The notes beneath the pieces are model-generated. The model was not told where the DNA came from. It was given only the letters and a program-made list of their open reading frames with translations, and searched no databases. DNA of 64,000 bases from Perkinsela sp. CCAP 1560/9 (Eukaryota > Protista > Euglenozoa: Kinetoplastea): positions 186,001-250,000 of the forward strand of contig CBFFSA010000014.1 in NCBI GenBank assembly GCA_965644495.1. Reading direction: 5' to 3'. The position numbers and the translations under genes were made by a program. This document shows positions 12,527 through 54,095 of the stretch, in pieces (within the stretch, counting starts at the first letter, position 1; the number at the start of each line of letters is the position of its first letter).

Positions 12527-14250
12527 TTACATCCGAATTCGTACGGATATTTTGTCTTCGCTCAATGTAAAGTGTTCGGGATGAGATTGTAGGAAGTGAC
12601 AGACCCCACCTTTCATTCTGCGAAGGACCGTGCGTGCATCACTCGGTAGTTGCACACCGATCTCAGAGACATTCATTGGAAGGAGGGGTTGACCTAAGAA
12701 CAGTTTTCGAAGCTCTTGAAGCAGGACATCGTCATTGAAATACGGATTTTCTACCGTAGCGCTCGGGCTCGCATTGTCGTCCTCGGTGGCTCGACGTACA
12801 AGATACTCTTTTTCAAAAGTACTTTTTTCTTGCACATAACGCATGTTTTCCGTGACAACGACACGGTCGGGAAATTTCTGGAACCACTTTGCAAAAGTAC
12901 ACATACTGCATTAAGACCCTTCGTAACGTGGTGATACGCGGCTCTCTGTTCATCACTAATATTTTCCAATACGGCTTCCAGTAGACCTTTTAAAGGGACG
13001 CACATACCCTGTTCTGGTAGTTTCAGAAAAACCTGCTCCATTAAATTTTGATTCCAACAATCGAATTCCTCGACGCTCATTGACACTTCCTTATCTCGTG
13101 CTTCCTCCAAATCTCTAAACTCTGTAAAATCAGGTGTAGCACATGCTTGGTTAGCATATTCGCGGGCGATTTTATTTTCATTACTGTTAAACCTCTGTTG
13201 AAACTCCGTCTGGATAAGCGTCGTATAGGGTGCGAAGCTGCAAGGGGGACATATCTCGGGATGTTTTTCACGTATGCGACTTCGTATTCTGGGATGTTTC
13301 GAGTCTTCCATATTCATTTCAAACGCCTTAGGATATAGGAATGCAATGGTAGGTAAACGAAACGGTGCGGTATGTAGCCACGTCTTGCATGACGGAAATA
13401 AAAAAGTTTTACACGCGAAGGAAACAGGAACAAAGTGTGCTGGTAACCCACAAGCCAATAAAACAATAAATTCTCGAGACAACCCCAAGTGCTCGCCATC
13501 CGCAGGAGGAAGCTCTGTCGAGGAACAGCTTGGAATTCTTTTAATGTATATGACTTGGTGAACCGGCATGAAGCCTATACGACAATCCTTGCAAAGAAAA
13601 ACATATAATTTTCTTACAGGGGTTTTCTCCCATAATGCTTTCATCTCCGGAGCTAACTTCTTGACCAATGTCTCAAGCTGCACAAAATAGTTCGGAGCAA
13701 GCAGAAGCAAAGCAGATGCCAGACGTTTAGTTAACATCACACATTCCGTATCCCCAATATTAAACACATCCCTGGCGATAGCTTCAAAGTCTTTTCGCAG
13801 TAAGAAGGCCACCTTGGTGGGATTCCACTGCACCGTGTAATGCTCTGCAAGTGTATCATCACTTTGTATGGTTGTCAAGACTTCGCATGGAGGTCGGTTG
13901 TAGTAGAGATATGAAAAGCAATCAAGCCGCGCCCATCCCTGTTTTGGGACATATAGCTCAAGAAAACGCTTCAAATCACCTGGTGAGGGTAGAAAATTTC
14001 CGTTAGCGTCTACTCGACGTCGCACCTTTGTGCCGTCATGGCTCAGTTGAAACCCAGCGGGATATTCTTTCAAAAAATTTTGTATTGACCCAAACGAGAC
14101 GTCCAGCACGCCTTGCACTCTCTTAGGCAACTTCATCTGTATGGTAGAGACGGTAGATACTGAGTGGTAGGGAACGTTTTTAGCAATGCTATAGGCAATC
14201 TCATGAGGCAAGGTAATAGGAGAATGAAACCGTCGCTGTGAACGCATCAT
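12527..14250 (-). pseudogene. Winged-helix (LOTUS/OST-HTH-like) family paralogue 1, frameshifted near 12900
   Basis: ORFs 12751-14259 and 12527-12904 together match the length and motifs of the 14641-16368 paralogue (EKEYLVRRATEDD vs EKDYLVRRATDDD). Confidence 0.75.
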
Positions 14251-14640
14251 TCTGTTCAACAGGACTCACATGTGAAAAGGGGTGCAACACTTATTCGAAT
14301 ATTTTAGAGAACTACAAGATTCCCTTTTCGAAGTAGAGTCCATAAACAACGCAAGTACATGTATGCCCGATGTTTAGCTATTTCTGTGAGGAAACGTCAC
14401 GGTCCCAATTCGAGCACATGTCAAGGAAGAAGGAACGAAGAAAACTTTTTTAAGATTTCATAGGGTGGACCACTACACTAGAAGTACATACACTAGAAGG
14501 GGAGGACTGGGAGGGTAAACACACTACATTCCATAAGGTATGTGTTATGATCAGCATAGCTACAGTATGACATAGCTATGAACGTCATAGTTATGTTTTT
14601 CTAGAATCGTATTGTTGAAAAAGCTTTCCTGTTACCCAAA

Positions 14641-16368
14641 CTACTGTACTTGATGGGATTCTTTTTTTAGATAAACTAGATGTGATTCACTATCATAAAT
14701 AAAGTGATCTGATTGCGACTGAATAAATTTCAAAACACCCCCGGCAGATCTCCGAAGTGCTGTCTGCGTTGCACGAGGCAAAGTGTTATGTATGTTGTAT
14801 ATGGAAATCGGTATTTTAGGACTAACAAGGAATAATTTACGAATCTCATTGAGTGAAGCATCTTCAGTGTAGTAAATATTCTGCTTCTGAGACGTGTCAT
14901 GTACCGCATCATCATCAGTGGCACGCCGCACAAGATAATCTTTCTCGTACCTTCGGTACTTGTCACAATATTGTATGCGTTCCTCCATAAAGAATTTACG
15001 AGGATTCTTTCGCAAAAGGCAAAAGAAGGATTCTCCATGTATAACTCCGGCTCGAAAGCGAAAATTCGGAGATCTTTCGACAGCTGAATTGAGGAACATG
15101 TGATACAAATCCCACGATGCAATGCTCTCCCCACTGTCCGGAAGTAACTCCCATATTATGTTGATCGCTTCTGCGCGATCAGCTGTATCTGCTTTTTGTG
15201 TGTCAGGCTTCCATTTCGTTATATCTTTAAATACTTTCAAACACGTGTCGGAGCAAACGGTTTCAGCAAAAGATTTTGCCTGACAGTTTTCCGGAAGGTT
15301 CAGTCGCCGAAAAAATTCCTCTTCGACACCTTCCCCATAGGGTGATTCATCACTGGGAGGACAAATTTCAGGGTGAGTTGTTCTCAAAAGACTTCGAACA
15401 AGATATGACGTTCCGAACAAACCAGTGCAGCATTTTTTGTCGAAGGCGCGTGGGAACAAAGAAACAATAGTAGAGAGACGAAATTCGCAGGATTTCAGCC
15501 ACGCTTTTACAGACGGAAATATATATTTATCTGCAACCTGTACAGCCACGAAGTTGTCTGGAAGGCTGCAGGCCAAAGACAACACCATTTTTAAAGGAAC
15601 GAAATATTCACTGTATTGCTCTGTGCAGCATGGAATATCCCTAACCTCGGGACGACGACGTACAAAGACTTCGCCGGTAGGTAGAAAAGTGGATATTTGA
15701 AATTTATCAAGGAAAGGATAGAAAAACCTGGGAGGATCTGCTTTAATTGTTCGCTGTACTTCAGCAGGGAGCCTCTTCTTCACCGCATAAAGGCTAACGA
15801 AATAATCTGGAATAAGTGACTCCATGATGTTGGAAGCAAATTTAGACATTAAAACCAAATTACTCGAGCCTATGGGATAAACTCCCTGGGCACGTTCCGT
15901 AAAACTACGTCGTGCTAAGAATGATGTTTTTAACACATCCCATTCGACCACGTATGCCTCGGATAAGGCATCGCTGCTTTGTATTCCAGATACCACGTAG
16001 CTGGGTTTTTGGTCATGGTATATTGAACAAAACTTGTCAAGACGGATCCATCCGTCTTCTGGAACGTACTGCTCCAAAAATTTCTCCAGGTCACCTGGTT
16101 GAGGAGTGCGACTGCCGTCTCCATCTAAACAAAGCCGAATATGACACTCATCTCGACTAAGTTGAAAAGCGGCGGGGTGTTTTTTCACGTAAGAAGCTAA
16201 ACTATTACCATATTCTTCGCTAAGTAGAGTTTTGATTTCGTTCTTCATTTTTGCATGTAGTCCCTGCACTGAGTCCTTTTTTGACCGGCGTAGAAAATAC
16301 ACTAAGACACATGCAATTTCACAAGACATTAAACGCTCCGGGGCTAATCTCACTAAAGACCTCCACAT
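14641..16368 (-). CDS. Winged-helix family paralogue 2, predicted mitochondrial
   Basis: Starts MWRSLVRL; family motifs YVPEDGWIRLD, LACSLP, IFPSVKAW, HPEICPP, GGVLKFI. Confidence 0.85.
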   Translation of the reverse strand: MWRSLVRLAPERLMSCEIACVLVYFLRRSKKDSVQGLHAKMKNEIKTLLSEEYGNSLASYVKKHPAAFQLSRDECHIRLCLDGDGSRTPQPGDLEKFLEQYVPEDGWIRLDKFCSIYHDQKPSYVVSGIQSSDALSEAYVVEWDVLKTSFLARRSFTERAQGVYPIGSSNLVLMSKFASNIMESLIPDYFVSLYAVKKRLPAEVQRTIKADPPRFFYPFLDKFQISTFLPTGEVFVRRRPEVRDIPCCTEQYSEYFVPLKMVLSLACSLPDNFVAVQVADKYIFPSVKAWLKSCEFRLSTIVSLFPRAFDKKCCTGLFGTSYLVRSLLRTTHPEICPPSDESPYGEGVEEEFFRRLNLPENCQAKSFAETVCSDTCLKVFKDITKWKPDTQKADTADRAEAINIIWELLPDSGESIASWDLYHMFLNSAVERSPNFRFRAGVIHGESFFCLLRKNPRKFFMEERIQYCDKYRRYEKDYLVRRATDDDAVHDTSQKQNIYYTEDASLNEIRKLFLVSPKIPISIYNIHNTLPRATQTALRRSAGGVLKFIQSQSDHFIYDSESHLVYLKKESHQVQ

Positions 16369-16822
16369 TGAAAGGTAGAGTAAGTATGAATTGTCGCATG
16401 CGGCTCTACTTTGTAAAATTAGATACACTGTCATACTGCTCTCACTTCAATAAATCTTTTCAACTCATGAAAAAGTATCACATTTTTTTGCTATCACTTT
16501 ATTACTGTATATCAGATGCTATTGCTCCTTATAAACCTGATTGTACTACGCTTCCCACGATGAAGAAGCCAGTTGCAAGTGGTGGCCCTTCCAATGCAAA
16601 GTAGCGTTCTCAAGTTTTACATACAGACATCGAAAATCCCCCAGGTGTTGGAGGAACCCTTACACTCATTAGAAAGAATTTAGAATCACTGCGTAAATTT
16701 GTTAAACAAAGATGCACAATAGAGGTTGTTCAACGCAATATTGAAACTATTTCTTCGAAAACAAAGTCCCTTGCACCTTCTTCTATTTTGTGTGTGTACT
16801 CTCAACAAAGAGTAATCAAGCG

Positions 16823-18550
16823 TTACGATTCCTTTAGATAAATTAGTGCCGAATCGCTTCCATGTGGTTCCATTCGAAACACTTTCGGATGGTTCGCGAT
16901 GAACTTACGCCATCCGCCCATAAAGCGAAGGGCTCTCCGCGCCTGACTCGGTAACATAAATAGAATGCCTGTAGGAGATTTTCCATTGCGGTCATTTTTG
17001 AGAAATGTTTCTCGAATGGCCTGAATGAGGGCCTCTGACGTGAGGTATGGGTTCTGTTGCCCTTGGCGATGCGATGTCTCTGCAGGACTCTGCTGCGCCG
17101 CCTTACTAACTATCCAGTCGTATGCACGACCCATTTGCACCTCCTCTACATGGAGTCGCTCTGGAAAACGTTTAACAAACTTCAGTAGTGAATTTCTATG
17201 TTTCAGTGTGATAGTGTTCTTGATCTTACGATATCGATCAGCGGGAACGAAGTCACGAAGACGAATCATTAAATCATACAATCGTATAGGATCATGGGAC
17301 TCATTAAGAACAAGATCTAGAGCATCCAATATTTCACTTGGTTCTAGTACGGGAGCATCTTTGCTAATCACAACGTCGTCTTTCCTTACCAAACGAAATA
17401 TTTTCCTTTGAAATAACTTGTCAGAAGGTTCGGAAACAAGTTCATTAAGCTCTTTAATTGTCTCCGGGCTCTGTTTCATCAGTTTTGCCTCAAACTCAGC
17501 TTCCGCTTCTAAAGTAAATGCCTGTTCGGTAGATGGCGCTAAATGTGGATACTTCATTCGCAGCGCTGAGCTGACTTTACCATACGGTTCTATATTAATC
17601 GCCTTGGGATACATTTGGGCGAGATCGGAAAGAGAAAATGCTGCACATTTTGCACCCCATTTCATTACGGAAGGAAATACAGCGCCCTGGGCGTAGAGAA
17701 CCGAGACCGGCGTGGTAGGGAGTGAGAACGCGAGCTTTAGCATGAGCTTTGGGTGTAAGTCGTAGGCCTCATAGATGGGCCACTTGTTTTCTTCTTCTTC
17801 AACCGAGCGCGTGGCGCCCCACTTCCGTACGTACGGGGGATCATTACGAAGGCAAGCCATTTCTAGCACTTCATCACAAAACCCTAGAGCCTGAGATACA
17901 TTTACGGAATTGTGCCACCTGTGCTCATCTAAATTGGCATCCATTTTCCCTTGTCGAAGTAGCATAGGAAACGGAACCCAAAAATTGGGCGCAAAGCTCT
18001 TGATGATTTTAAGAAGTGTCGGTGCCTTAATGCAAGTTGAGTTATCACCCAGCGAAACTCTCCCCCCAGTCGATTCCCAAAACTTCTTGCGTATAATGTA
18101 TTCCTTCTCGCTATTGGAGCATGCTTTTTGAAGATCAAAAATTTCAGCACAAGATGGGTCGTTTGATAGGTGTGAAATCACGTAAGACTTTCGCAATTTA
18201 GGGTGTAGTAGTCTACAAAAATCTTCAATTAGTAGGAATCCGAATTTCGGCACATATCTTTTCAATGCTTCACTTAACTGGGAGGACGAAGGAATGTGTT
18301 CGCGCACCTTCAAACGAACTATGGTTTCATCCCGATTCAAAAGAAACAATTCGGGGTAACGTTTAACAAATTTTATCATATCATACTGCTCAGCCGCAGC
18401 AACTTTAACAGGAACAGCAGCTTTACTTGTGATATTCGCTATAAATCGCTGGTTTTTCTCTGCGACTTTTAGCGTTTTTTGGAGCCACACTAATAAGTCA
18501 GTCGGATGGACAAGAGTGTCCATCCGAAAGCGCGACGAAATACGGAACAT
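16823..18550 (-). CDS. Winged-helix family paralogue 3, predicted mitochondrial
   Basis: Starts MFRISSRFR; motifs YVPKFGF, LAFSLP, VFPSVMKW, GGWRKFIANHPKVF. Confidence 0.85.
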   Translation of the reverse strand: MFRISSRFRMDTLVHPTDLLVWLQKTLKVAEKNQRFIANITSKAAVPVKVAAAEQYDMIKFVKRYPELFLLNRDETIVRLKVREHIPSSSQLSEALKRYVPKFGFLLIEDFCRLLHPKLRKSYVISHLSNDPSCAEIFDLQKACSNSEKEYIIRKKFWESTGGRVSLGDNSTCIKAPTLLKIIKSFAPNFWVPFPMLLRQGKMDANLDEHRWHNSVNVSQALGFCDEVLEMACLRNDPPYVRKWGATRSVEEEENKWPIYEAYDLHPKLMLKLAFSLPTTPVSVLYAQGAVFPSVMKWGAKCAAFSLSDLAQMYPKAINIEPYGKVSSALRMKYPHLAPSTEQAFTLEAEAEFEAKLMKQSPETIKELNELVSEPSDKLFQRKIFRLVRKDDVVISKDAPVLEPSEILDALDLVLNESHDPIRLYDLMIRLRDFVPADRYRKIKNTITLKHRNSLLKFVKRFPERLHVEEVQMGRAYDWIVSKAAQQSPAETSHRQGQQNPYLTSEALIQAIRETFLKNDRNGKSPTGILFMLPSQARRALRFMGGWRKFIANHPKVFRMEPHGSDSALIYLKES

Positions 18551-26786: not shown

Positions 26787-28730
26787 TCACTCCATCCGTC
26801 GCCTCCCCCCTCGCTGGGATCCCTCTCGTTTCTGTGCGACCGCCTTGTTTTTTTTCTCTTCCTCCTCCCTCTCCTCTGGGGTCACCAGCCACACGACATT
26901 AGCAAACTTATCGAAGTGAAACGTCCCGGGGTGTTTTAAAATTACCTGCGTCAGCCCGCCGTATCTTCGAGCCGCTTTCTTTGCGGCCTCCGGGAGCTGT
27001 GCCTGCAGCGCGTTCATCGACTTGCGACGCTCCGTGTCGGCCGCCCAACAATCCAGCATGGCTTTCAATAGATTATCCATTAACAAATATGGATTCCCCT
27101 TCTCGTGGTCACATACCTCGTCGCGACGTCGTACGCAGTTCTCATAGATCACATTGCCATGTGCTGTCTCCTTTTTTTGCTGGAATATATGAAACTTGTC
27201 ATGGTGTTTACGAAGGAATGTCATTGGACGCCCATCATGGCGTAGATCTAAACCGTTGCGCAGCATCATGTGCTGCCTGGTATTGAGATGAGAGCTCACC
27301 AGGGGAAGCAGATCTGGCATAAGCACCGAAGAAAACTCCGGGATACGATGGTAAATAATGTCCGCAATCTCGGCGTCGGTCATGGAGGGGGCGTCAAGCG
27401 GCAGAGAAATCCAGCCGAGTTTGGAGGAGTACACCCGCTTGAACCCCTCTCGTTTGCGGCGCTCGAAATCGACCGGAGTGAACATCGAGGTGCAGGGCTC
27501 CTCGGCGAGATTCAGAAGCTCCCGACGTGCCTCGGCGTGAGTTTCGGAAGTCAATGCGACGTCAAATGTTGCCTCCGCCTCCAGGGTGTGCTCGGTCCCC
27601 TCCACCGGCGACATCTCCGGGTAATCCTCCCTCACCAACGACCGTATCTGCCGGGTCTCACTGCGTGCGATAAGTTTCGGAAACATACACGCCATTGCGG
27701 AAAGCGTAAAAGCACTCTGGGCCCCCCATTTTGCAATCGAGGGAAATACCCCCGCCTGAGCCTGTTCGAGGGAAACAAACTTTGTGGGAAGACAAAACGC
27801 CAGCTTCACCATCACCTCCGGCGGCATCGCATAGCTCCTGTAGCTCCCCGCTAACCTCTCATCCTTATCCACATCCCACGCCACTTTCACATTCGGCAAC
27901 CTCCGGACAAATATCTCCTTCTGTTTTCCATAATACGCCTGGTCCAGCTCCGGGGTCACCAACAGCACCGTCTCCGGCCCCACCCCCCTCTCCGTCACCG
28001 TCCGTCGCACATAGGACACCACCACCGCCCACGGCACCCAGTACCCCGGGGTGATTTGCAAAACCCGCTTCCCCACATCCACCGCGGTGCCATACATCAC
28101 CGTCCCGCTCCCCGGCGGGAACCGGCTCTTGGTCTCCGCCACCCAGGCGCGCCTCCCCACGTACGGCGCCCCCTCGCTGTGGTCCTTTCGCACCTCGTAG
28201 CGCGTGGCCATCTCCCCCCCCCGGGTCAGCACCTGGAGCAGCCGCGGCACCTCCTGGGAGAGCATAATGTGCAGCAGCTCGAGCCGGATGTAACCCGCGT
28301 GGGGCACCAGGCGGTGGATCCCGTTCGCGAGGTCGGCGTCCTGCTGCACCACGGACGGGGGGACGCGACGGAGCTGGAGCGCGGTGCCCTCCCGGTTGAG
28401 CTGGAAGTAGGTGGGGAAGGCGTGGGCGAAGGTGCGGGGGGTGCCGAAGTACTTCTCCAGTTTCACCCCGTCCCGGTAGGACAGCGCGGGGAGCAGCGCG
28501 GAGAGGGGGAGACGGCCGGGGGGGAAGTTCCCGATGCGGTGCGCGCAGAGTAGGCAGCGCGCGACGGTGAACACGAGGTCGAGCCCGGCGGAGCGACGGA
28601 CCTCGGGGTACTGCGAGGCGACGTAGGAGGTGGTGAGGAGGTGGTCGAGGGAGGGGGGAGGGGGCGGAGGGGGGGCGCAGCGAAGGGTGGGGGTGCGGTA
28701 GTGGAGGAGGGGGAAAAGGTTGCGGTACAT
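26787..28730 (-). CDS. Winged-helix family paralogue 4, predicted mitochondrial
   Basis: Starts MYRNLFPLL; motifs LVPHAGYIRLE, LAFCLP, VFPSIAKW, YGGLTQVILKHPGTF. Confidence 0.85.
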   Translation of the reverse strand: MYRNLFPLLHYRTPTLRCAPPPPPPPSLDHLLTTSYVASQYPEVRRSAGLDLVFTVARCLLCAHRIGNFPPGRLPLSALLPALSYRDGVKLEKYFGTPRTFAHAFPTYFQLNREGTALQLRRVPPSVVQQDADLANGIHRLVPHAGYIRLELLHIMLSQEVPRLLQVLTRGGEMATRYEVRKDHSEGAPYVGRRAWVAETKSRFPPGSGTVMYGTAVDVGKRVLQITPGYWVPWAVVVSYVRRTVTERGVGPETVLLVTPELDQAYYGKQKEIFVRRLPNVKVAWDVDKDERLAGSYRSYAMPPEVMVKLAFCLPTKFVSLEQAQAGVFPSIAKWGAQSAFTLSAMACMFPKLIARSETRQIRSLVREDYPEMSPVEGTEHTLEAEATFDVALTSETHAEARRELLNLAEEPCTSMFTPVDFERRKREGFKRVYSSKLGWISLPLDAPSMTDAEIADIIYHRIPEFSSVLMPDLLPLVSSHLNTRQHMMLRNGLDLRHDGRPMTFLRKHHDKFHIFQQKKETAHGNVIYENCVRRRDEVCDHEKGNPYLLMDNLLKAMLDCWAADTERRKSMNALQAQLPEAAKKAARRYGGLTQVILKHPGTFHFDKFANVVWLVTPEEREEEEKKNKAVAQKREGSQRGGRRRME

Positions 28731-28913
28731 GGGGGGAAGGAAGACGTGAGATTGGAAGAGGTTAGGATTGGGGGAAATAAAAAAAGAGTTGAGTAGAAAC
28801 AAGGATGTGGTTGGGAAGGTGTAGCGAGACGAATGGGAAATACCGGTGAGGTCAGTATGTTGGATTTTCTTTACAAGGGATGTTAGAGGTGTGTCGTGGC
28901 AGTGACCTGGTGC

Positions 28914-30698
28914 TTATCTGCTACCTGTGGAAGTGTTATTTTGTTGAATTGTGCTACATAATAGAACCACTACTTGTCCGCACACTCGGATATTCTTTGG
29001 ATATGCCATGAAAAACTTTTGAATTCCCTTGGTTCGCAAAGATTTTTTTGCGCCATCCGGTAGACGCTCAAACAGATTACTGATGGCCATTGATTTTCGT
29101 CCAGTATCAAAGCAAGAAATTATAGCTTCAAGGAGAATTTGCGGGTCCAAAAAAATATTTCCCCGTTCCTCGGGAGAAGCTGGTTGTCGAGACAGAATAT
29201 ATTGGAGTCGTTTATCCTCCTTGGGTTGCTGCTCCATGCTAAAACCGCAGTTAGGATATTTGCGTATAAGCTTGACAATGCTTCCCTGGTGTCGACTTAG
29301 CAAAGCATGTTTTACTTTATCCTGAACGACACTACTGATATTACGTATATCTGCCGTTACCTGGACCAGTGGCACGCACTCCATCTCAGGGACTCTTTCG
29401 CGTATCATTTCCAGTATCTCATGATCGGTAAACGGATTTTGCACTCTGTCTAAGAGCTTTTTCTTCCATCCGACTCGAACTTTTACCTTTTCCGTACATT
29501 TGTATGGCTGGAAAAACTTACTTGAGGGCTCGGAAGCCATGTGCAGCAAATGTTCCAGCTCGGGGCTTGCAGCAATCTTGGTGCAAAACTCAGATTCCGC
29601 CTCAGCGGTATATTCTAGACCTGTTTCTGGGGATATATCGGGGTATTGCTTTCGTACTATGGAGCGTACGTCTTTTTCCCAATTGACTTCTATAATTTCT
29701 GGATACATTTTAACAAGGGCGGAAAAGGAAAACGCAAGATCGTTCTCGATCCACCTTTTGACAGAAGGAAACACATTCCATTGTGCCTCCCTCTGAGAGC
29801 GAAATTCACAAGGCAACGAAAAAGCTAACTTCAAAACTTTCTTGGGACCGAGTCGGAACGATGTATGCGACACCTCACACGGAGGAAGTTCAAACTCACA
29901 ATTTCGATTGTCGCGCCGAACAAAAATATCACTACTATTCGCGTAGCTGGAGAGCTGAATGGCCTGATTTAAAATTGCTGAAACTCGACTATGTCCAGCT
30001 ACATCTATGGCATTACGATGTTCCGGTGGTACACGCTCTAGACACTCTTGTAAGGGTACCCAATAATGCGGTACGGCGCGAATCAACATGTCCGCCGCTT
30101 CTGCTGCCAAAAATAAACTATGGTTATCACCAACTAAGAAAACACTAAGCAGGCAAGCTTCTGTTTCACGTTTTAATATGAATCGTTTCTTATTTGAATC
30201 AATAGCCGTTGTATATATTTTTTGTAGATCCTCGTTGTTTAAGAACAATTGGTAAACCGTCGCAGAAGATATATTGCCAAACAGATGACACAGTAACTCA
30301 AGATGAACGAAACCTATTGGAGGCATTATAGACTCCAGCACCTTTTGCAATGCCTTCTCGTTGATGTCTTTTTCAGGAATCGGAGGGACTCGCTCAATGA
30401 GGTCTCGATCGGGAAAAATGCGGAAAACACTTGGGTAGTTAGAAAAAAGGTTATTAATAGATCCCCAATACTCCACTATCTTAGATCTCTTTTGCTCCTT
30501 CCATCTTGCTCTCACATTCGACAGTGAACCCCTCCAAGGCCGTGCGTTGTAGCCCGTTCGATTATTTACGCGGTCACAAAGCGTCAGACACGTCCAACTA
30601 AGCGTCTCAAACGCAAGTATGTTGCGCGCCAAAATTTTCATGCTGGCGCGACATGATAAATCTTTCTGTTGGACTCTGATGCGCGAGAATAGAAACAT
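28914..30698 (-). CDS. Winged-helix family paralogue 5, predicted mitochondrial
   Basis: Starts MFLFSRIR; motifs WGSINNLFSNYPSVF, LAFSLP, VFPSVKRW, YPDISP. Confidence 0.85.
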   Translation of the reverse strand: MFLFSRIRVQQKDLSCRASMKILARNILAFETLSWTCLTLCDRVNNRTGYNARPWRGSLSNVRARWKEQKRSKIVEYWGSINNLFSNYPSVFRIFPDRDLIERVPPIPEKDINEKALQKVLESIMPPIGFVHLELLCHLFGNISSATVYQLFLNNEDLQKIYTTAIDSNKKRFILKRETEACLLSVFLVGDNHSLFLAAEAADMLIRAVPHYWVPLQECLERVPPEHRNAIDVAGHSRVSAILNQAIQLSSYANSSDIFVRRDNRNCEFELPPCEVSHTSFRLGPKKVLKLAFSLPCEFRSQREAQWNVFPSVKRWIENDLAFSFSALVKMYPEIIEVNWEKDVRSIVRKQYPDISPETGLEYTAEAESEFCTKIAASPELEHLLHMASEPSSKFFQPYKCTEKVKVRVGWKKKLLDRVQNPFTDHEILEMIRERVPEMECVPLVQVTADIRNISSVVQDKVKHALLSRHQGSIVKLIRKYPNCGFSMEQQPKEDKRLQYILSRQPASPEERGNIFLDPQILLEAIISCFDTGRKSMAISNLFERLPDGAKKSLRTKGIQKFFMAYPKNIRVCGQVVVLLCSTIQQNNTSTGSR

Positions 30699-45768: not shown

Positions 45769-47613
45769 TTAAAATGTAACTATTTTTTGGGGAGTCGGCA
45801 AAGCATCATTGTGTGTAGCTGGGCGCCTACGAATATAGTCAGCCATCCGGGCAGGGTCAGACAAAAGTGTATCCTCTAGCGTCCGAGTGGGATAATCTCC
45901 CACCGCAGTCTCTGTGAAATAAGCAGAATCTCGCTCCGCCATTGTGCCCGTGGAGGGAGCGCAATTGTTTTGAACATTTTCTGCCCCTTCTGCCATGGAG
46001 CCGGGGGCCTCACCATTTTCAGTGTTTGTAACTTTTTCGTTCGTATCTGTGAATATACTCTCCGCGTGGGAATCGGAGGCATGCGATTGAATTATGTACG
46101 ACAATTCCTCCATACTGTACTCATTCAGCTCATTCAGCTCCTCCGAGGAAAGGGCTTTAACTTTTGATAACGCACGAAGCCGTCGCAGACGACGGGAACG
46201 AAAATATGGCCAGTCGCGTTGAATAAAAGGCCGCCAAAGTGGGTTCACATGCTCCAGATAAATTTGCGGAACGCTCACTGCACGAAGAGTTCCGGACACC
46301 ATATCTCGTATACTGTATGGGCCGATGCTCACCCGCGTCACACGGGAGCATTTGCGACCCAATTTTTCCATGAGAAGCGGGACACGCATCGGAAGCGATC
46401 CTCGAACACTAACACGTACGTAATTTTTACATTCGTCCCATGGTACATGTGCGACATTGAATGTTATATTGTTGTACACGACCCCATCCAGTCGCACCCC
46501 TTTCGTATTAAATGCCTCCGCGAGAACCGGGTCTATTTTCGGAACAACTTTCGCAATGTACGTTCGTTGGATTTGACTACTGGGATGCATCATAAACTGA
46601 GCCAAATCCCCGTCATTGGTTAACAAAATAAGCCCTCGGTCCTCATGTGAGAGGGTACCCATCGGCACTACATGCGAGAGTCCATAAATGGCCGAGAGCC
46701 ATGACCACAGTGTTCGTCGTCCCCTCGACTCGGACATCGCAGGCCCACAGGACATGTTCCGTGGCTTGTAGAACGCCCACAGCTGGGGGGCCTGGAACCG
46801 TAGCCTTCCTCGGTGTCCCTTTACATTAATCACGTCCTCGGGGGTTACCGTCGCGAACGGATTGCGCTCGGGAGATCCGTTTAGAAATACTTCCCCCTCC
46901 GTGATTAACTTTTGCGAGACCTCTCGGGTCGTGAGCCCCGCGCGTGGGAGACAACGGTGAAGGGTAATCGCACGGGGGGCACTTTCCAAACCGTGAGCCG
47001 GGGGAAATGCATCACCCATCTCTGAGAGATCGGGTACGGGGGAGGGGGACATCCCCGGGGTGAAGTCCCGTCGAAGCCTTGCCCCAATGAGATCCTCCTC
47101 CACCACCCCGTCGAGCTCACGTAGTCTCTCCTCCAGCATGGAGTGAGAGAGCTCTTGGGAATCTTTTGTGCTCGTGTCTGATTGATTCCGTGTTTTGGTG
47201 CTTTCGGTCTCGCTCTCAATAAGCGGTATGGGATCGAGACGTGATTCTGGGAGAGTGGGATCTGAAGTGGTAGGGGAGGAAGAATTCCTCTCCCCAGGTA
47301 ACGAGGATCGATCACTACGCACTAGGTCGGGTGTTTGTGGTGTTCCAAGATGGGCAGCAACGGTGTGAAATGCCAGCGAGATTACCGCAGAGTCGTCAGC
47401 ATATTCTGGTTTTTGGTCGTAAGGAGATTCTGAGACATTTGCTCTCGACAACAAGACCTCCGTGGGAGATGCAGCTCTCATCCTTCGCCTACAACAGCAA
47501 AACAGTTCACTAAGTGAATTAACTCTTCTGCTCAAAAAGAAGGTTGCGCTTTTAGACCTCATGGCATCGGTTATGTCAACAGATTTCAAACTTGAATGTC
47601 TTGAAATAATCAA
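45769..47613 (-). CDS. RsuA/RluB-family pseudouridine synthase-like protein with S4 domain, catalytic motif degenerate
   Basis: S4-like RAGLTTREVSQKLITEGEVFLNG, FYKPR, GLILLTNDG, RVSIGPY. GRLD is replaced by GTLS. Start uncertain. Confidence 0.88.
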   Translation of the reverse strand: MIISRHSSLKSVDITDAMRSKSATFFLSRRVNSLSELFCCCRRRMRAASPTEVLLSRANVSESPYDQKPEYADDSAVISLAFHTVAAHLGTPQTPDLVRSDRSSLPGERNSSSPTTSDPTLPESRLDPIPLIESETESTKTRNQSDTSTKDSQELSHSMLEERLRELDGVVEEDLIGARLRRDFTPGMSPSPVPDLSEMGDAFPPAHGLESAPRAITLHRCLPRAGLTTREVSQKLITEGEVFLNGSPERNPFATVTPEDVINVKGHRGRLRFQAPQLWAFYKPRNMSCGPAMSESRGRRTLWSWLSAIYGLSHVVPMGTLSHEDRGLILLTNDGDLAQFMMHPSSQIQRTYIAKVVPKIDPVLAEAFNTKGVRLDGVVYNNITFNVAHVPWDECKNYVRVSVRGSLPMRVPLLMEKLGRKCSRVTRVSIGPYSIRDMVSGTLRAVSVPQIYLEHVNPLWRPFIQRDWPYFRSRRLRRLRALSKVKALSSEELNELNEYSMEELSYIIQSHASDSHAESIFTDTNEKVTNTENGEAPGSMAEGAENVQNNCAPSTGTMAERDSAYFTETAVGDYPTRTLEDTLLSDPARMADYIRRRPATHNDALPTPQKIVTF

Positions 47614-49748: not shown

Positions 49749-50441
49749 TCAAGTCACACACCGCTTTGCAAGCTTTTCCTTCAGTGTATTGACTTCGCTT
49801 TGAAGTTTGCTGCATTTCTCGGAAAGTTCTTCGAGTTCAACGCTTTTGTTTGCTAATGTTTCATTTAGCTCCGTGTGCTCGGCGCTGTTTACAACTATGT
49901 TTCTTAAATTATTTTTCAATTTTCCGATTTCCAATTTCGTTATCTCATAATTTTCACGCTCAAGGCCCAAATGAAATTCATATTCCTCTACGTTTTCACG
50001 CAATTGTTCGAGGTTGTGCTTTTCTGCCACCGCCCAAATGTTGTCTGAATTTTTATTGGTGCTGGTAACACTGCTGAGTAATTGACCGAGCTCTGCTCTC
50101 TTAGTACGTAGCTTTTGATGTTTTGCCTTCAATTCGTATTCGTTCATGATATCGGTCATTTCGGGAGAAGGATACACGCCGAGTACCTTCTTGTGAGCCA
50201 CTGCATTCTCCGCGGTTTGATACGCTTTCCAGAGCTCGTTTAATAGCTTCGAATCTCCGCTGGATTCTGCTCTAGAAAAGAGACACGCGGGACACCGTGT
50301 AAATGATCTACATCGCGTGTTGAAGAGCATTTTGCTCTTAAAAAACGAATGTATCCCAGTTTGTGTAACATATTGGCGTCGAAGCATTGTCTGAGTATGC
50401 CAAAGATATGAAGCTGTATAACTCATCGTCGGGCATGCCAT
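49749..50441 (-). CDS. Hypothetical coiled-coil protein, possibly mitochondrial
   Basis: 230-aa ORF on the gene strand; heptad-rich C-terminus; MLRR-type internal start. Confidence 0.7.
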   Translation of the reverse strand: MACPTMSYTASYLWHTQTMLRRQYVTQTGIHSFFKSKMLFNTRCRSFTRCPACLFSRAESSGDSKLLNELWKAYQTAENAVAHKKVLGVYPSPEMTDIMNEYELKAKHQKLRTKRAELGQLLSSVTSTNKNSDNIWAVAEKHNLEQLRENVEEYEFHLGLERENYEITKLEIGKLKNNLRNIVVNSAEHTELNETLANKSVELEELSEKCSKLQSEVNTLKEKLAKRCVT

Positions 50442-50699: not shown

Positions 50700-52571
50700 T
50701 CAGTTCGTGCTCGGATCCTTTTCAACTATCGGTACACAGCATAGCCAACGCACGGACTGCGTCTCGTCCTCCGGATCCTCACAAAACGGAATATGCCACA
50801 TTCGTTTTCCCCCTTTCCGTTGAAACTGCATATACGGCGGATCCTCCGTACTGATTTTCATAAAACAACGAAGGCACAGCACCTTTTTCTCCTGCTTTTC
50901 AAACACCACCTCCTCCACCGCATGGGGAAACATTTTCCTCACCACCCCCTCCACCAGCTCCGTTGAGGCTATATCCTGCGCCCCCTGCATGTGAAACCCC
51001 AGCAGCGCCCTCTCCGCCTCCTCCCCCATCCCCCGATGCTGGTACACCCGCATCATGGCCTCATAACTCCCCGCGGTGAACCGCACCCCCACATTCCCCG
51101 CAAACGTCCGTAGCTGCTGGATCTGCTCCAGCGCACTGGTGGCCGCGAGGGCACGGAAGATGGGCTCGAAGCACCGCCCCTTCATGTAGCGCAGTGGACG
51201 GGAGCGTAGGAACGCAATGGCGTCGTGTACGCGGCCATCCTCACAGAGTACCGCAACGGCGGCGAGCGTAACCTCGGGGGTCCAGGTGAAGGTGGGGCCT
51301 GCGGCATAGGCACGGTCGAGTACGGTGAAGGCGTGGGCCCTGTGTTCGTTGCGAATACGACTTGCCTCCGTGCTGTTGTTCGTGTTGTCGCTGTTCGGAT
51401 TCGCGATGACTCTGCGACAGTGCTGGAGGACGGTGGCGGTGGTGGCGGGGGTGTCGGGGAGGTGGGGGTTGGACTGTAGGGTGTGGAGGAGGGCGGCGAT
51501 ACGGGAGGGGAGGGTGGTGAGGTCGGGGGTGGGGAGAGGGGGGAGGGAGGGGGGAGGGAGAGGGGGGTGACCGATGGGGTCGAGGAGGGGGGAGGGGAGG
51601 GAGGGGGGTTGTGTTGGTTGTGGTGGTGTTGGGGTTTCTGATGGTTGTTGTGCTTGTTGTTGCTGCTGGCATTCTTGTTGTTGTTGTTGTACATGCTGCT
51701 GCTGCTGCTGCCATTCTTGTTGTTGTTGTGACAATTGTTGTTGTTGTGACAATTGTTGTTCTTGTGACAATTGTTGTTGTTGTGATAATTGTTGTTGTTG
51801 TGATAATTGTTGTTGTTGTGATAATTGTTGTTGTTGTGATAATTGTAGTTGTTGTTGTTGTGATAATTGTTGTTGTTGCCATTCTTGTTGTTGTTGTTGT
51901 TGTACATGCTGCTGCTGCTGCTGCCATTCTTGTTGTTGTTGTTGCTGCCATTGTTCAGGTTGTTGTTGTGTAGACGGGTGGTGAGGGTTATCAAAACCCA
52001 TGAGTGAGGCGGGTGTTGATGTTTGGGCGTATTCCATCGATACAGTTGTTGTTGTGGCCGTTGTTGTTGTATGGAGGGGTGGAGTGGGGGATGAGGAAGA
52101 GGAAGGGGTGTAGGGGGGAGAGGGTGAGTCGGAGGTGAAGGGGTTGGTTACGTAAGGAGGGTCTTGGATTTGCTCTCCTGCATGGGGTATGTTGGAAAGG
52201 GTAGAGTTGTTTGGAGGGGTGGAAGGGGATGACTGGTCGGGGGATGGAGCACTCTCATGGGGGTCACGTGTGGCTCCGTCTTGGTCCTTAAATGATGACT
52301 CGTCAGGGCATTCAGTGAATGTGGTGTTTACCATGGTGGCGGAGAATCCTTTCTGCATGTGAAGCTGATGAATTTGCTCACTGGAAAGCGGGGGTGAAGC
52401 TGTAAAGCTTTCACCTTGAGAAGAGAGCTCAGCCGCTACATGCGGACTAAAATCTGAAAACCCAGTTTGCGGGTTTGTGTGTACACGACGTGTAAAATGA
52501 GCGAAAGTTTGGGAGAAAGAATAAAGCCCTGACGTAGAGCCTCGAAACCCACGAAGAGTGTACATGTGCAT
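50700..52571 (-). CDS. PRORP-like PPR protein with poly-Gln tract and Zn-binding central domain, lacking the NYN domain
   Basis: PPR-like repeats, then CLRC, PPY, WHIP and WLC in PRORP order; presequence-like N-terminus. Confidence 0.75.
   Translation of the reverse strand: MHMYTLRGFRGSTSGLYSFSQTFAHFTRRVHTNPQTGFSDFSPHVAAELSSQGESFTASPPLSSEQIHQLHMQKGFSATMVNTTFTECPDESSFKDQDGATRDPHESAPSPDQSSPSTPPNNSTLSNIPHAGEQIQDPPYVTNPFTSDSPSPPYTPSSSSSPTPPLHTTTTATTTTVSMEYAQTSTPASLMGFDNPHHPSTQQQPEQWQQQQQQEWQQQQQHVQQQQQQEWQQQQLSQQQQLQLSQQQQLSQQQQLSQQQQLSQQQQLSQEQQLSQQQQLSQQQQEWQQQQQHVQQQQQECQQQQQAQQPSETPTPPQPTQPPSLPSPLLDPIGHPPLPPPSLPPLPTPDLTTLPSRIAALLHTLQSNPHLPDTPATTATVLQHCRRVIANPNSDNTNNSTEASRIRNEHRAHAFTVLDRAYAAGPTFTWTPEVTLAAVAVLCEDGRVHDAIAFLRSRPLRYMKGRCFEPIFRALAATSALEQIQQLRTFAGNVGVRFTAGSYEAMMRVYQHRGMGEEAERALLGFHMQGAQDIASTELVEGVVRKMFPHAVEEVVFEKQEKKVLCLRCFMKISTEDPPYMQFQRKGGKRMWHIPFCEDPEDETQSVRWLCCVPIVEKDPSTN
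51640..51970. repeat. CAA/CAG poly-Gln repeat with 18-bp LSQQQQ units
   Basis: Tandem tgataattgttgttgttg units. Confidence 0.95.
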
Positions 52572-52715: not shown

Positions 52716-54095
52716 TTATACCGAATCTGGGTACATTTCCAGAATCATCGTGCGAACAGGATCATCTTTACTTTTGAGAAGCGTAGCGCACTGAAATACA
52801 ATAATTTCAGTGTCCACAACATTGAACATACGACTGTTGTTTTCTGTGTTAAAATACGCGTATTGTGATTTAGGGATGTACAGGTGAAGATTAACGCAAG
52901 TGTTGTTCGAGATGGACGATACCCATGTAGAGAGAACCGTCGGAGGCCGAGATAAATAGCTGGAGAGATCCGTCGCACCTCCCCCTATTCGCTTCTCGTG
53001 TGTGAATCGAATATTCCACCAATAAGGAATTACGGAGACATAATGAACAGAGAGCCCGTTGACGCCTTCAAATGGGCGAAGCAGCGAACGCTCAAGAAAA
53101 GAGTCCCCGAACAGCGCCTCTGCAAAATCTTCGTCATAGGGAATGTCGAGGGTGAACACCCACTTGGGCCTACAGCTCTGCGTCACACGATGCAGAAGCT
53201 CATTTCCAAGTTCAGCGCGCAACACGCTGCCGAAACTACCGAAAAATCTGTCGGTTTCGTAGAATGCCGAACCGAACACCATCGGGGCACCGGGACTGTT
53301 TTCGGTAAAAGCATTGAGGGGCGACGCACATAAGTCAATAACAGTGTAGCCGGACTGCACGAGCCTTTCCTTCAGTCGAAGATCGGCACACAGCTGTAAC
53401 GATCCACTTCGCAGAATGCGTATGTAGCGAATTAAAACCGTAGCAATGCGGTAAAGAATCTCTTCGGGCGCCTGAGGGGAGTTTGTCCGGTAAAGCCGCC
53501 GAAGTCGTTCGTAGGTAGCGGCGGGAACAGAAATGGAGAAAGCATAGGGCTCGGCATTCACGACAACCGCAACTTGCAGATGCACGGAATGCCCAATACA
53601 GGAAGGGAGAGTGGGTTTTTTGGAAGCTGTCCTCGGTAAGTAGTCTTCGCGGACCAGTCGCAAGGTAGAAAGTTGTGTTACTCCCTTTAAAGTGCAAATC
53701 TCGTTCCATGATTTTTGACATTTCACAATTAAGGAAAAGTTTTGGAGAAAGCTTCGTAATCGATCAATGTCTTCGGAGTGGTGCAGATCTAGCAGGAGCG
53801 CTGTATCACGTAGGAGTTGTGCATCGTAGGTGGGACCAGCAAGAGGAAGGAATGCCATGGCAGGTGGAAACTGTCCTGATTTCTGAACTCGAAAAGGTGA
53901 GGATTGACTCAGAATCCACTTTGCTAAGGCCTCCCACAGCTTGCGCTCTGCTCTGGCGTGTTGCAATACTTTGCGTACCGGGAAAGCTTGCTTTAGCGCC
54001 ACATGGAACTCAACGTTTATTGAAGTCCAGGCTCGTTCAAGCAATACTTCGGAAACAAGCGCTTCGAGGGCGCCTGATTGATCCTCCAGCTGCAT
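52716..54095 (-). CDS. PCIF1/CAPAM-like cap adenosine N6-methyltransferase
   Basis: LIRY...SLQ, DLCASPLN, FGSAFYETDRFFGSFGS and DIPY at the NPPF position. No WW domain. Confidence 0.8.
   Translation of the reverse strand: MQLEDQSGALEALVSEVLLERAWTSINVEFHVALKQAFPVRKVLQHARAERKLWEALAKWILSQSSPFRVQKSGQFPPAMAFLPLAGPTYDAQLLRDTALLLDLHHSEDIDRLRSFLQNFSLIVKCQKSWNEICTLKGVTQLSTLRLVREDYLPRTASKKPTLPSCIGHSVHLQVAVVVNAEPYAFSISVPAATYERLRRLYRTNSPQAPEEILYRIATVLIRYIRILRSGSLQLCADLRLKERLVQSGYTVIDLCASPLNAFTENSPGAPMVFGSAFYETDRFFGSFGSVLRAELGNELLHRVTQSCRPKWVFTLDIPYDEDFAEALFGDSFLERSLLRPFEGVNGLSVHYVSVIPYWWNIRFTHEKRIGGGATDLSSYLSRPPTVLSTWVSSISNNTCVNLHLYIPKSQYAYFNTENNSRMFNVVDTEIIVFQCATLLKSKDDPVRTMILEMYPDSV

Follow-up and report, generated by a model that had tools for sequence, protein, structure and literature searches.

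A conserved PRORP-derived protein without the NYN nuclease domain in Perkinsela-like kinetoplastids, predicted to be a non-cutting mitochondrial RNA-handling protein

The minus strand of a 64,000-nucleotide stretch of the 21-Mb genome of Perkinsela sp. CCAP 1560/9 (contig CBFFSA010000014.1, positions 186,001 to 250,000; hereafter the window) carries an ORF of 623 aa at 50700–52571. Genes of the window are syntenic with Perkinsela sp. CCAP 1560/4 and with two ENA metagenome contigs; a search for a paraflagellar rod gene, made without a positive control, found none in this genome. A PCIF1-like methyltransferase gene (52716–54095, minus strand; PF12237, E 2e-8) lies directly upstream of the ORF, and a gene with the same Pfam hit lies about 6 kb upstream of the orthologue in loci L004 and L005. 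Directly downstream is a coiled-coil protein (49749–50441, minus strand) that is syntenic in L004 and L005 (27–28% identity) and has no confident Pfam family. An S4 plus pseudouridine synthase-like protein (45769–47613, minus strand) is 39% identical to the syntenic Perkinsela gene in locus L009. At 12751–18550 and 26787–30698 (minus strand), at least five paralogous ORFs of 500–670 aa all match the same two genes of L004, indicating a local family expansion. The 623-aa ORF has the following parts:

50700–52571, minus strand: whole ORF, 623 aa, with a presequence-like start, a low-complexity linker, a PPR domain and a contiguous PRORP-type zinc domain
52482–52571, minus strand: mitochondrial presequence-like first 30 aa, with 4 Arg and no Asp or Glu (composition only); similar in orthologues
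51525–52481, minus strand: non-conserved Ser/Pro-rich and Gln-rich linker of about 320 aa
50931–51524, minus strand: PPR domain, about ten predicted helices, collinear with PRORP PPR1–5, with a 20-aa insertion after the LQHCR motif in this species only
50865–50876, minus strand: CxxC, first half of the zinc site (C566, C569; equivalent to AtPRORP1 C344, C347)
50841–50864, minus strand: 8-residue junction that replaces the helical linker plus the NYN nuclease domain
50736–50840, minus strand: second half of the zinc domain, with MQFxR, RxWHxP (H593) and WxCC (C611)

A preliminary description, based on the sequence at 50700–51400 alone, had proposed that this is a PRORP-like protein from which the NYN nuclease domain is precisely missing, with only 8 residues between the two zinc-domain halves, all four ligands present and the frame intact. 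We confirmed this observation. On the minus strand, CLRC (50876–50865) is followed in frame by exactly 8 residues (50864–50841) and then by PPYMQFQR (50840–50817), RMWHIP (50804–50787) and WLCC (50747–50736), and none of the NYN motifs (DGAN, DDxxW, NDxMRDH) is present. Two points required correction. The folded part starts near 51524 and the gene at 52571, outside the coordinates originally given. In addition, the residues PPY, which had been taken as part of the second zinc half, are not the PRORP PxxYS motif in register: they are peculiar to this species, orthologues have FPC, YPC or TAS there, and the Tyr sits 2 residues, not 5, before the conserved Gln. The PxxYS motif, which is invariant in intact kinetoplastid PRORPs, is gone; the deletion therefore removes the NYN domain plus the helical linker and the PxxYS element, about 180–220 residues.

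To determine whether the short junction might be an assembly artefact, we searched for relatives. A word-index protein search with the C-terminal part alone found nothing, but an exhaustive phmmer search over 1.84 billion representatives found three relatives at 42–47% identity (E 1e-45 or better), and a profile search added Perkinsela KNH05378.1 (locus L009:3741–4796; a second record is KNH05723.1) and one more; a further hit, P0005, was a chance repeat match. The five orthologues are 37–47% identical to the window protein, and three are syntenic with it (those in L004, L005 and L009). The most distant one (P0004, locus L007:101–1435, JGI Ga0194129 / SRR7053298) is as far from the window protein as from Perkinsela, carries a low-complexity Gln/Ala tail at its C-terminus instead, and has a different, repeat-rich neighbour (MORN-like by eye). 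All six proteins have 23–25 residues between the second Cys and the His (23 in the window protein), compared to 243 (L002) and 233 (L003) in the two intact PRORPs of this genome, 246 in the PhM-4 PRORP and 200 in AtPRORP1, the overall range in intact PRORPs being 200–246, with 380 in one that carries insertions. The four ligands are invariant in 6 of 6, as is a fifth, adjacent Cys (C612), and no NYN motif is present in any of the six. Between Perkinsela and orthologue P0007, the PPR part has dN 0.097 and dS 1.45 (dN/dS about 0.07), while in the zinc part synonymous sites are saturated and dN is 0.13. A second public assembly of the same organism (L014, 99.98% identical over 12.3 kb) has 50700–51400 letter for letter, although it may rest on the same reads. 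In the linker, L014 has an extra base in a homopolymer at about 51537 that breaks the frame, so that gene callers report only a 118-aa fragment (P0001); the Gln-rich and Pro-rich insert (51525–52000) gives long ORFs in several frames. The N-terminal region is much shorter in orthologues (about 90–110 aa or less), and that of the window protein is 14% identical to the Perkinsela N-terminus. Altogether, the occurrence of the same deletion in open frames in five other assemblies, under purifying selection, refutes both a collapsed assembly and a decaying pseudogene.

We then compared the protein with known families and structures. Pfam gave weak PPR hits and a weak match to the last 38 positions of the PRORP model (PF16953, positions 205–242, E 0.19; 11.8 bits against a cut-off of 39.1). 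Sequence searches of the PDB found only generic PPRs and did not reach PRORP, and the ESM Atlas likewise gave generic PPR clusters only. An AlphaFold model of residues 350–623, built from only four sequences, has a mean pLDDT of 85.6. Foldseek ranked Arabidopsis PRORP2 first (E 1.8e-4). In VIA-align the nine best entries were PRORPs, the best being 5diz_B (Z 17.6, rmsd 4.5, 239 residues aligned, model 1–266 against chain 42–515), that is, across the NYN gap, and the top three entries of an unbiased wide search were also PRORPs. The PPR part superposes on the tRNA-bound PRORP1 PPR domain (6lvr, Z 14.5–14.7, rmsd 3.0 at Z 14.7, model 1–201 against chain 109–293). When the 94-residue zinc part was folded alone, three PRORPs, human and plant, ranked first (Z 5.5, 5.3 and 4.9; next 3.3); these Z values are modest, and Foldseek on the isolated zinc part gave nothing significant.

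Profile comparisons extended these observations. The family aligned with the PhM-4 PRORP over 210 columns, from the first helix through CxxC (E 3.8e-7; E 2–4e-7 to prokinetoplastid PRORPs), and with the C-terminus of the intact PRORP L003 (E 6e-4). In the genome, the family profile hit the intact PRORP L002 at E 0.014. A weak hit of the zinc-domain profile (E 0.08) at C4:895616–895723 lies in a 99-aa frame within low-complexity DNA and is probably due to chance. The profile scored prokinetoplastid PRORP1-like proteins highest (24.6 and 21.8 bits), above non-kinetoplastid PRORPs (10.2 or less; shuffled maximum 12.3), which favours duplication and loss inside kinetoplastids. The best tree agrees only weakly, grouping the family with kinetoplastid PRORPs at 55/28; a position outside them is not rejected (p-AU 0.10), and trees on 247 columns did not resolve the parent paralogue. 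A plain MAFFT alignment with full-length PRORPs misaligned across NYN and was discarded. Some non-kinetoplastid PRORPs in our set (P0012, P0014 and P0016, of which P0012 and P0014 group with a diatom protein) show the converse situation, keeping NYN but having lost the CxxC zinc ligands.

The genome also holds two complete PRORPs with all NYN motifs, L002 on contig C5 and L003 on contig C6. L003 has an acid-free, presequence-like start and L002 does not, which matches the nuclear PRORP1 and mitochondrial PRORP2/KRNP1 of T. brucei (PMC3807811), although this assignment is our inference. A free NYN gene that could form a split enzyme was not found: only these two loci match PF16953 or the kinetoplastid PRORP profile, and none match PF01936 or PF11977. 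All six NYN-less proteins have Arg-rich, acid-poor N-termini once P0002 and P0004 are extended to their upstream Met, an observation of composition only.

We then asked whether the determinants of tRNA-elbow binding are retained. In AtPRORP1, Y140A and R184A lower pre-tRNA affinity more than 190-fold and 67-fold, and R212A lowers it below detection (PMC5689006); these residues contact the elbow in the co-crystal (PMC10941002). By sequence alignment at about 20% identity, all four intact kinetoplastid PRORPs compared have His at the Y140 position, a Lys/Arg in the PPR3 helix three residues before the R184 position, and Arg at the R212 position. In the NYN-less family, the Y140 position is His in 2 of 6 and Gln in 4 of 6 (Gln383 in the window protein), neither PPR3 position is basic in any of the six, and the R212 position is Arg only in the window protein (R466) and Gly, Ser, Glu or Leu in the other five. 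The R210 position is Lys in 5 of 6. The invariant arginines of the family lie elsewhere, two of them in the zinc domain next to the old NYN junction.

These results only partly support the interpretation first offered, namely a nuclease-less PRORP reused as a tRNA-elbow-binding adaptor, probably mitochondrial, with conceivable roles in tRNA import or handling or in ribosome assembly. PRORP ancestry, loss of NYN with all four zinc ligands kept, the presence of intact PRORPs elsewhere in the genome and, from composition alone, probable mitochondrial targeting are supported. Elbow binding is not supported as stated, the window protein being the most favourable case, and a role in tRNA import remains conjecture.

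We propose that a PRORP gene duplicated in an ancestor of the Perkinsela-like Prokinetoplastina and that one copy lost the NYN nuclease by an in-frame deletion of about 210–220 codons that joined the two halves of the split zinc domain. Our analysis establishes the fold homology, the deletion, its conservation, purifying selection and the coexistence with two intact PRORPs; that the protein is imported into the mitochondrion, binds one Zn through Cys/Cys/His/Cys and cannot cut RNA is inferred from sequence and predicted structure alone. In this view, the closed zinc domain caps the five-repeat PPR arc, and the protein most likely works as a non-catalytic RNA-binding or scaffold subunit of mitochondrial gene expression (mitoribosome assembly or rRNA/mRNA stabilisation). 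It would use a remodelled surface (invariant Arg in CR, xRV, FLxSR, RLT, MQFxR and RxWH) and not the classical tRNA-elbow pocket. We put the identity as a NYN-less PRORP derivative at about 0.95 and this mechanism at about 0.5. Repurposed dead enzymes and PPR proteins are common in euglenozoan mitoribosomes and their assembly (PMC10325924), but no solved trypanosomatid mitoribosomal protein or assembly factor has this zinc domain, so there is no direct precedent. The folded part is near neutral or acidic, although intact PRORPs are too.

Among the alternatives, a retained elbow binder acting as a non-cutting adaptor for imported mitochondrial tRNAs or tRNA-like elements is possible but unlikely. 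The superposition on tRNA-bound PRORP1, the Lys at the R210 position, R466 of the window protein and the His kept by two orthologues speak for it, and trypanosomatid mitochondria import all their tRNAs (PMC3807811). The loss of the R212-equivalent in 5 of 6, of the PPR3 basic residue in 6 of 6 and the Gln at the Y140 position in 4 of 6 speak against it. Less likely still is a non-catalytic partner or regulator of a mitochondrial nuclease, either L003 or a PPR-PIN protein, supplying specificity in trans or competing for substrate: human PRORP needs helper subunits and plant PRORP1 binds the NYN protein MNU2 (PMC11740979), but no stand-alone PRORP-type NYN gene was found in the genome and L003 keeps its own elbow residues. 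Tentatively, the evidence also leaves room for a naturally evolved, stand-alone, non-cutting tRNA-shape reader, or a trans-acting specificity subunit, that handles imported tRNAs or the still unidentified mitochondrial rRNA fragments of Perkinsela; it would be the first RNase P derivative repurposed by whole-domain deletion, and a pull-down handle on those missing RNAs.

It is improbable that the protein survives from an ancestral PPR plus contiguous zinc-domain protein that existed before NYN was inserted. A split zinc domain does imply a contiguous precursor (inferred from PMC10941002), and the tree does not reject a position outside kinetoplastid PRORPs. However, among 1.84 billion representatives the family was found only in Perkinsela-like organisms and one related metagenome, its sequence is closest to prokinetoplastid PRORP1, with which it shares motifs, and the PxxYS element is missing. 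The range seen is thus Prokinetoplastina-like only, although relatives below about 25% identity would be missed, since the single-sequence search did not reach even intact PRORPs. An ordinary PPR protein with an unrelated zinc ribbon is largely refuted: despite the weak Pfam match, the non-significant Foldseek result and the identity of only about 20%, the PPR part, the CxxC and the C-terminal part each match PRORPs independently and in order. The name "radical SAM protein" carried by the Perkinsela orthologue (P0006) is likewise wrong, since this protein has only CxxC and not CxxxCxxC, and the family is predicted to fold as PPR plus zinc domain, not as a partial TIM barrel.

Compared to single-subunit PRORPs (AtPRORP1/2 and the T. 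brucei enzymes), which are its best structural and profile match, the protein has the five-repeat PPR arc followed by the Cys/Cys/His/Cys zinc domain, but it has no NYN domain or catalytic Asp residues, its zinc domain is contiguous, its elbow residues are mostly lost by alignment, and it is present in addition to two intact enzymes. Since NYN with catalytic aspartates (D399, D475 and D493 in AtPRORP1) defines the subtype (PMC10941002), it is not an RNase P. Human mitochondrial PRORP (MRPP3) has the same PPR plus central zinc domain (8cbk_E, Z 14.6; isolated domain Z 5.3–5.5), but it is the catalytic subunit, and its helpers TRMT10C and SDR5C1 are unrelated proteins, not PRORP paralogues. MNU2 is a mitochondrial RNA-processing factor tied to PRORP (PMC11740979) that has the nuclease domain, the present protein being the opposite case. 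Kinetoplastid PPR mitoribosomal proteins and assembly factors, such as chains F2, F7 and FX of the T. brucei mt-SSU assemblosome, are non-catalytic mitochondrial PPR proteins that give a generic PPR match (Z 11–12), without sequence similarity and without a PRORP-type zinc domain.

Reviews describe every PRORP as PPR, split zinc domain and NYN (PMC10941002), and literature and supplement searches on PRORP in Perkinsela, on the accession numbers and on PRORP-like proteins, within mostly open-access papers, found no description of this protein. A conserved family without NYN indicates that the two zinc-domain halves can close on each other and that RNase P can give rise to a non-catalytic paralogue. 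The protein is kept under strong selection even in Perkinsela, the most reduced kinetoplastid genome (PMC12936278), so it probably does something important. Perkinsela mitochondrial rRNAs have not been found (PMC4669381), and the role of mitochondrial PRORP in organisms that import mature tRNAs is open (PMC3807811). A lineage-specific PRORP-derived binder, as inferred here, is a concrete probe for both questions.
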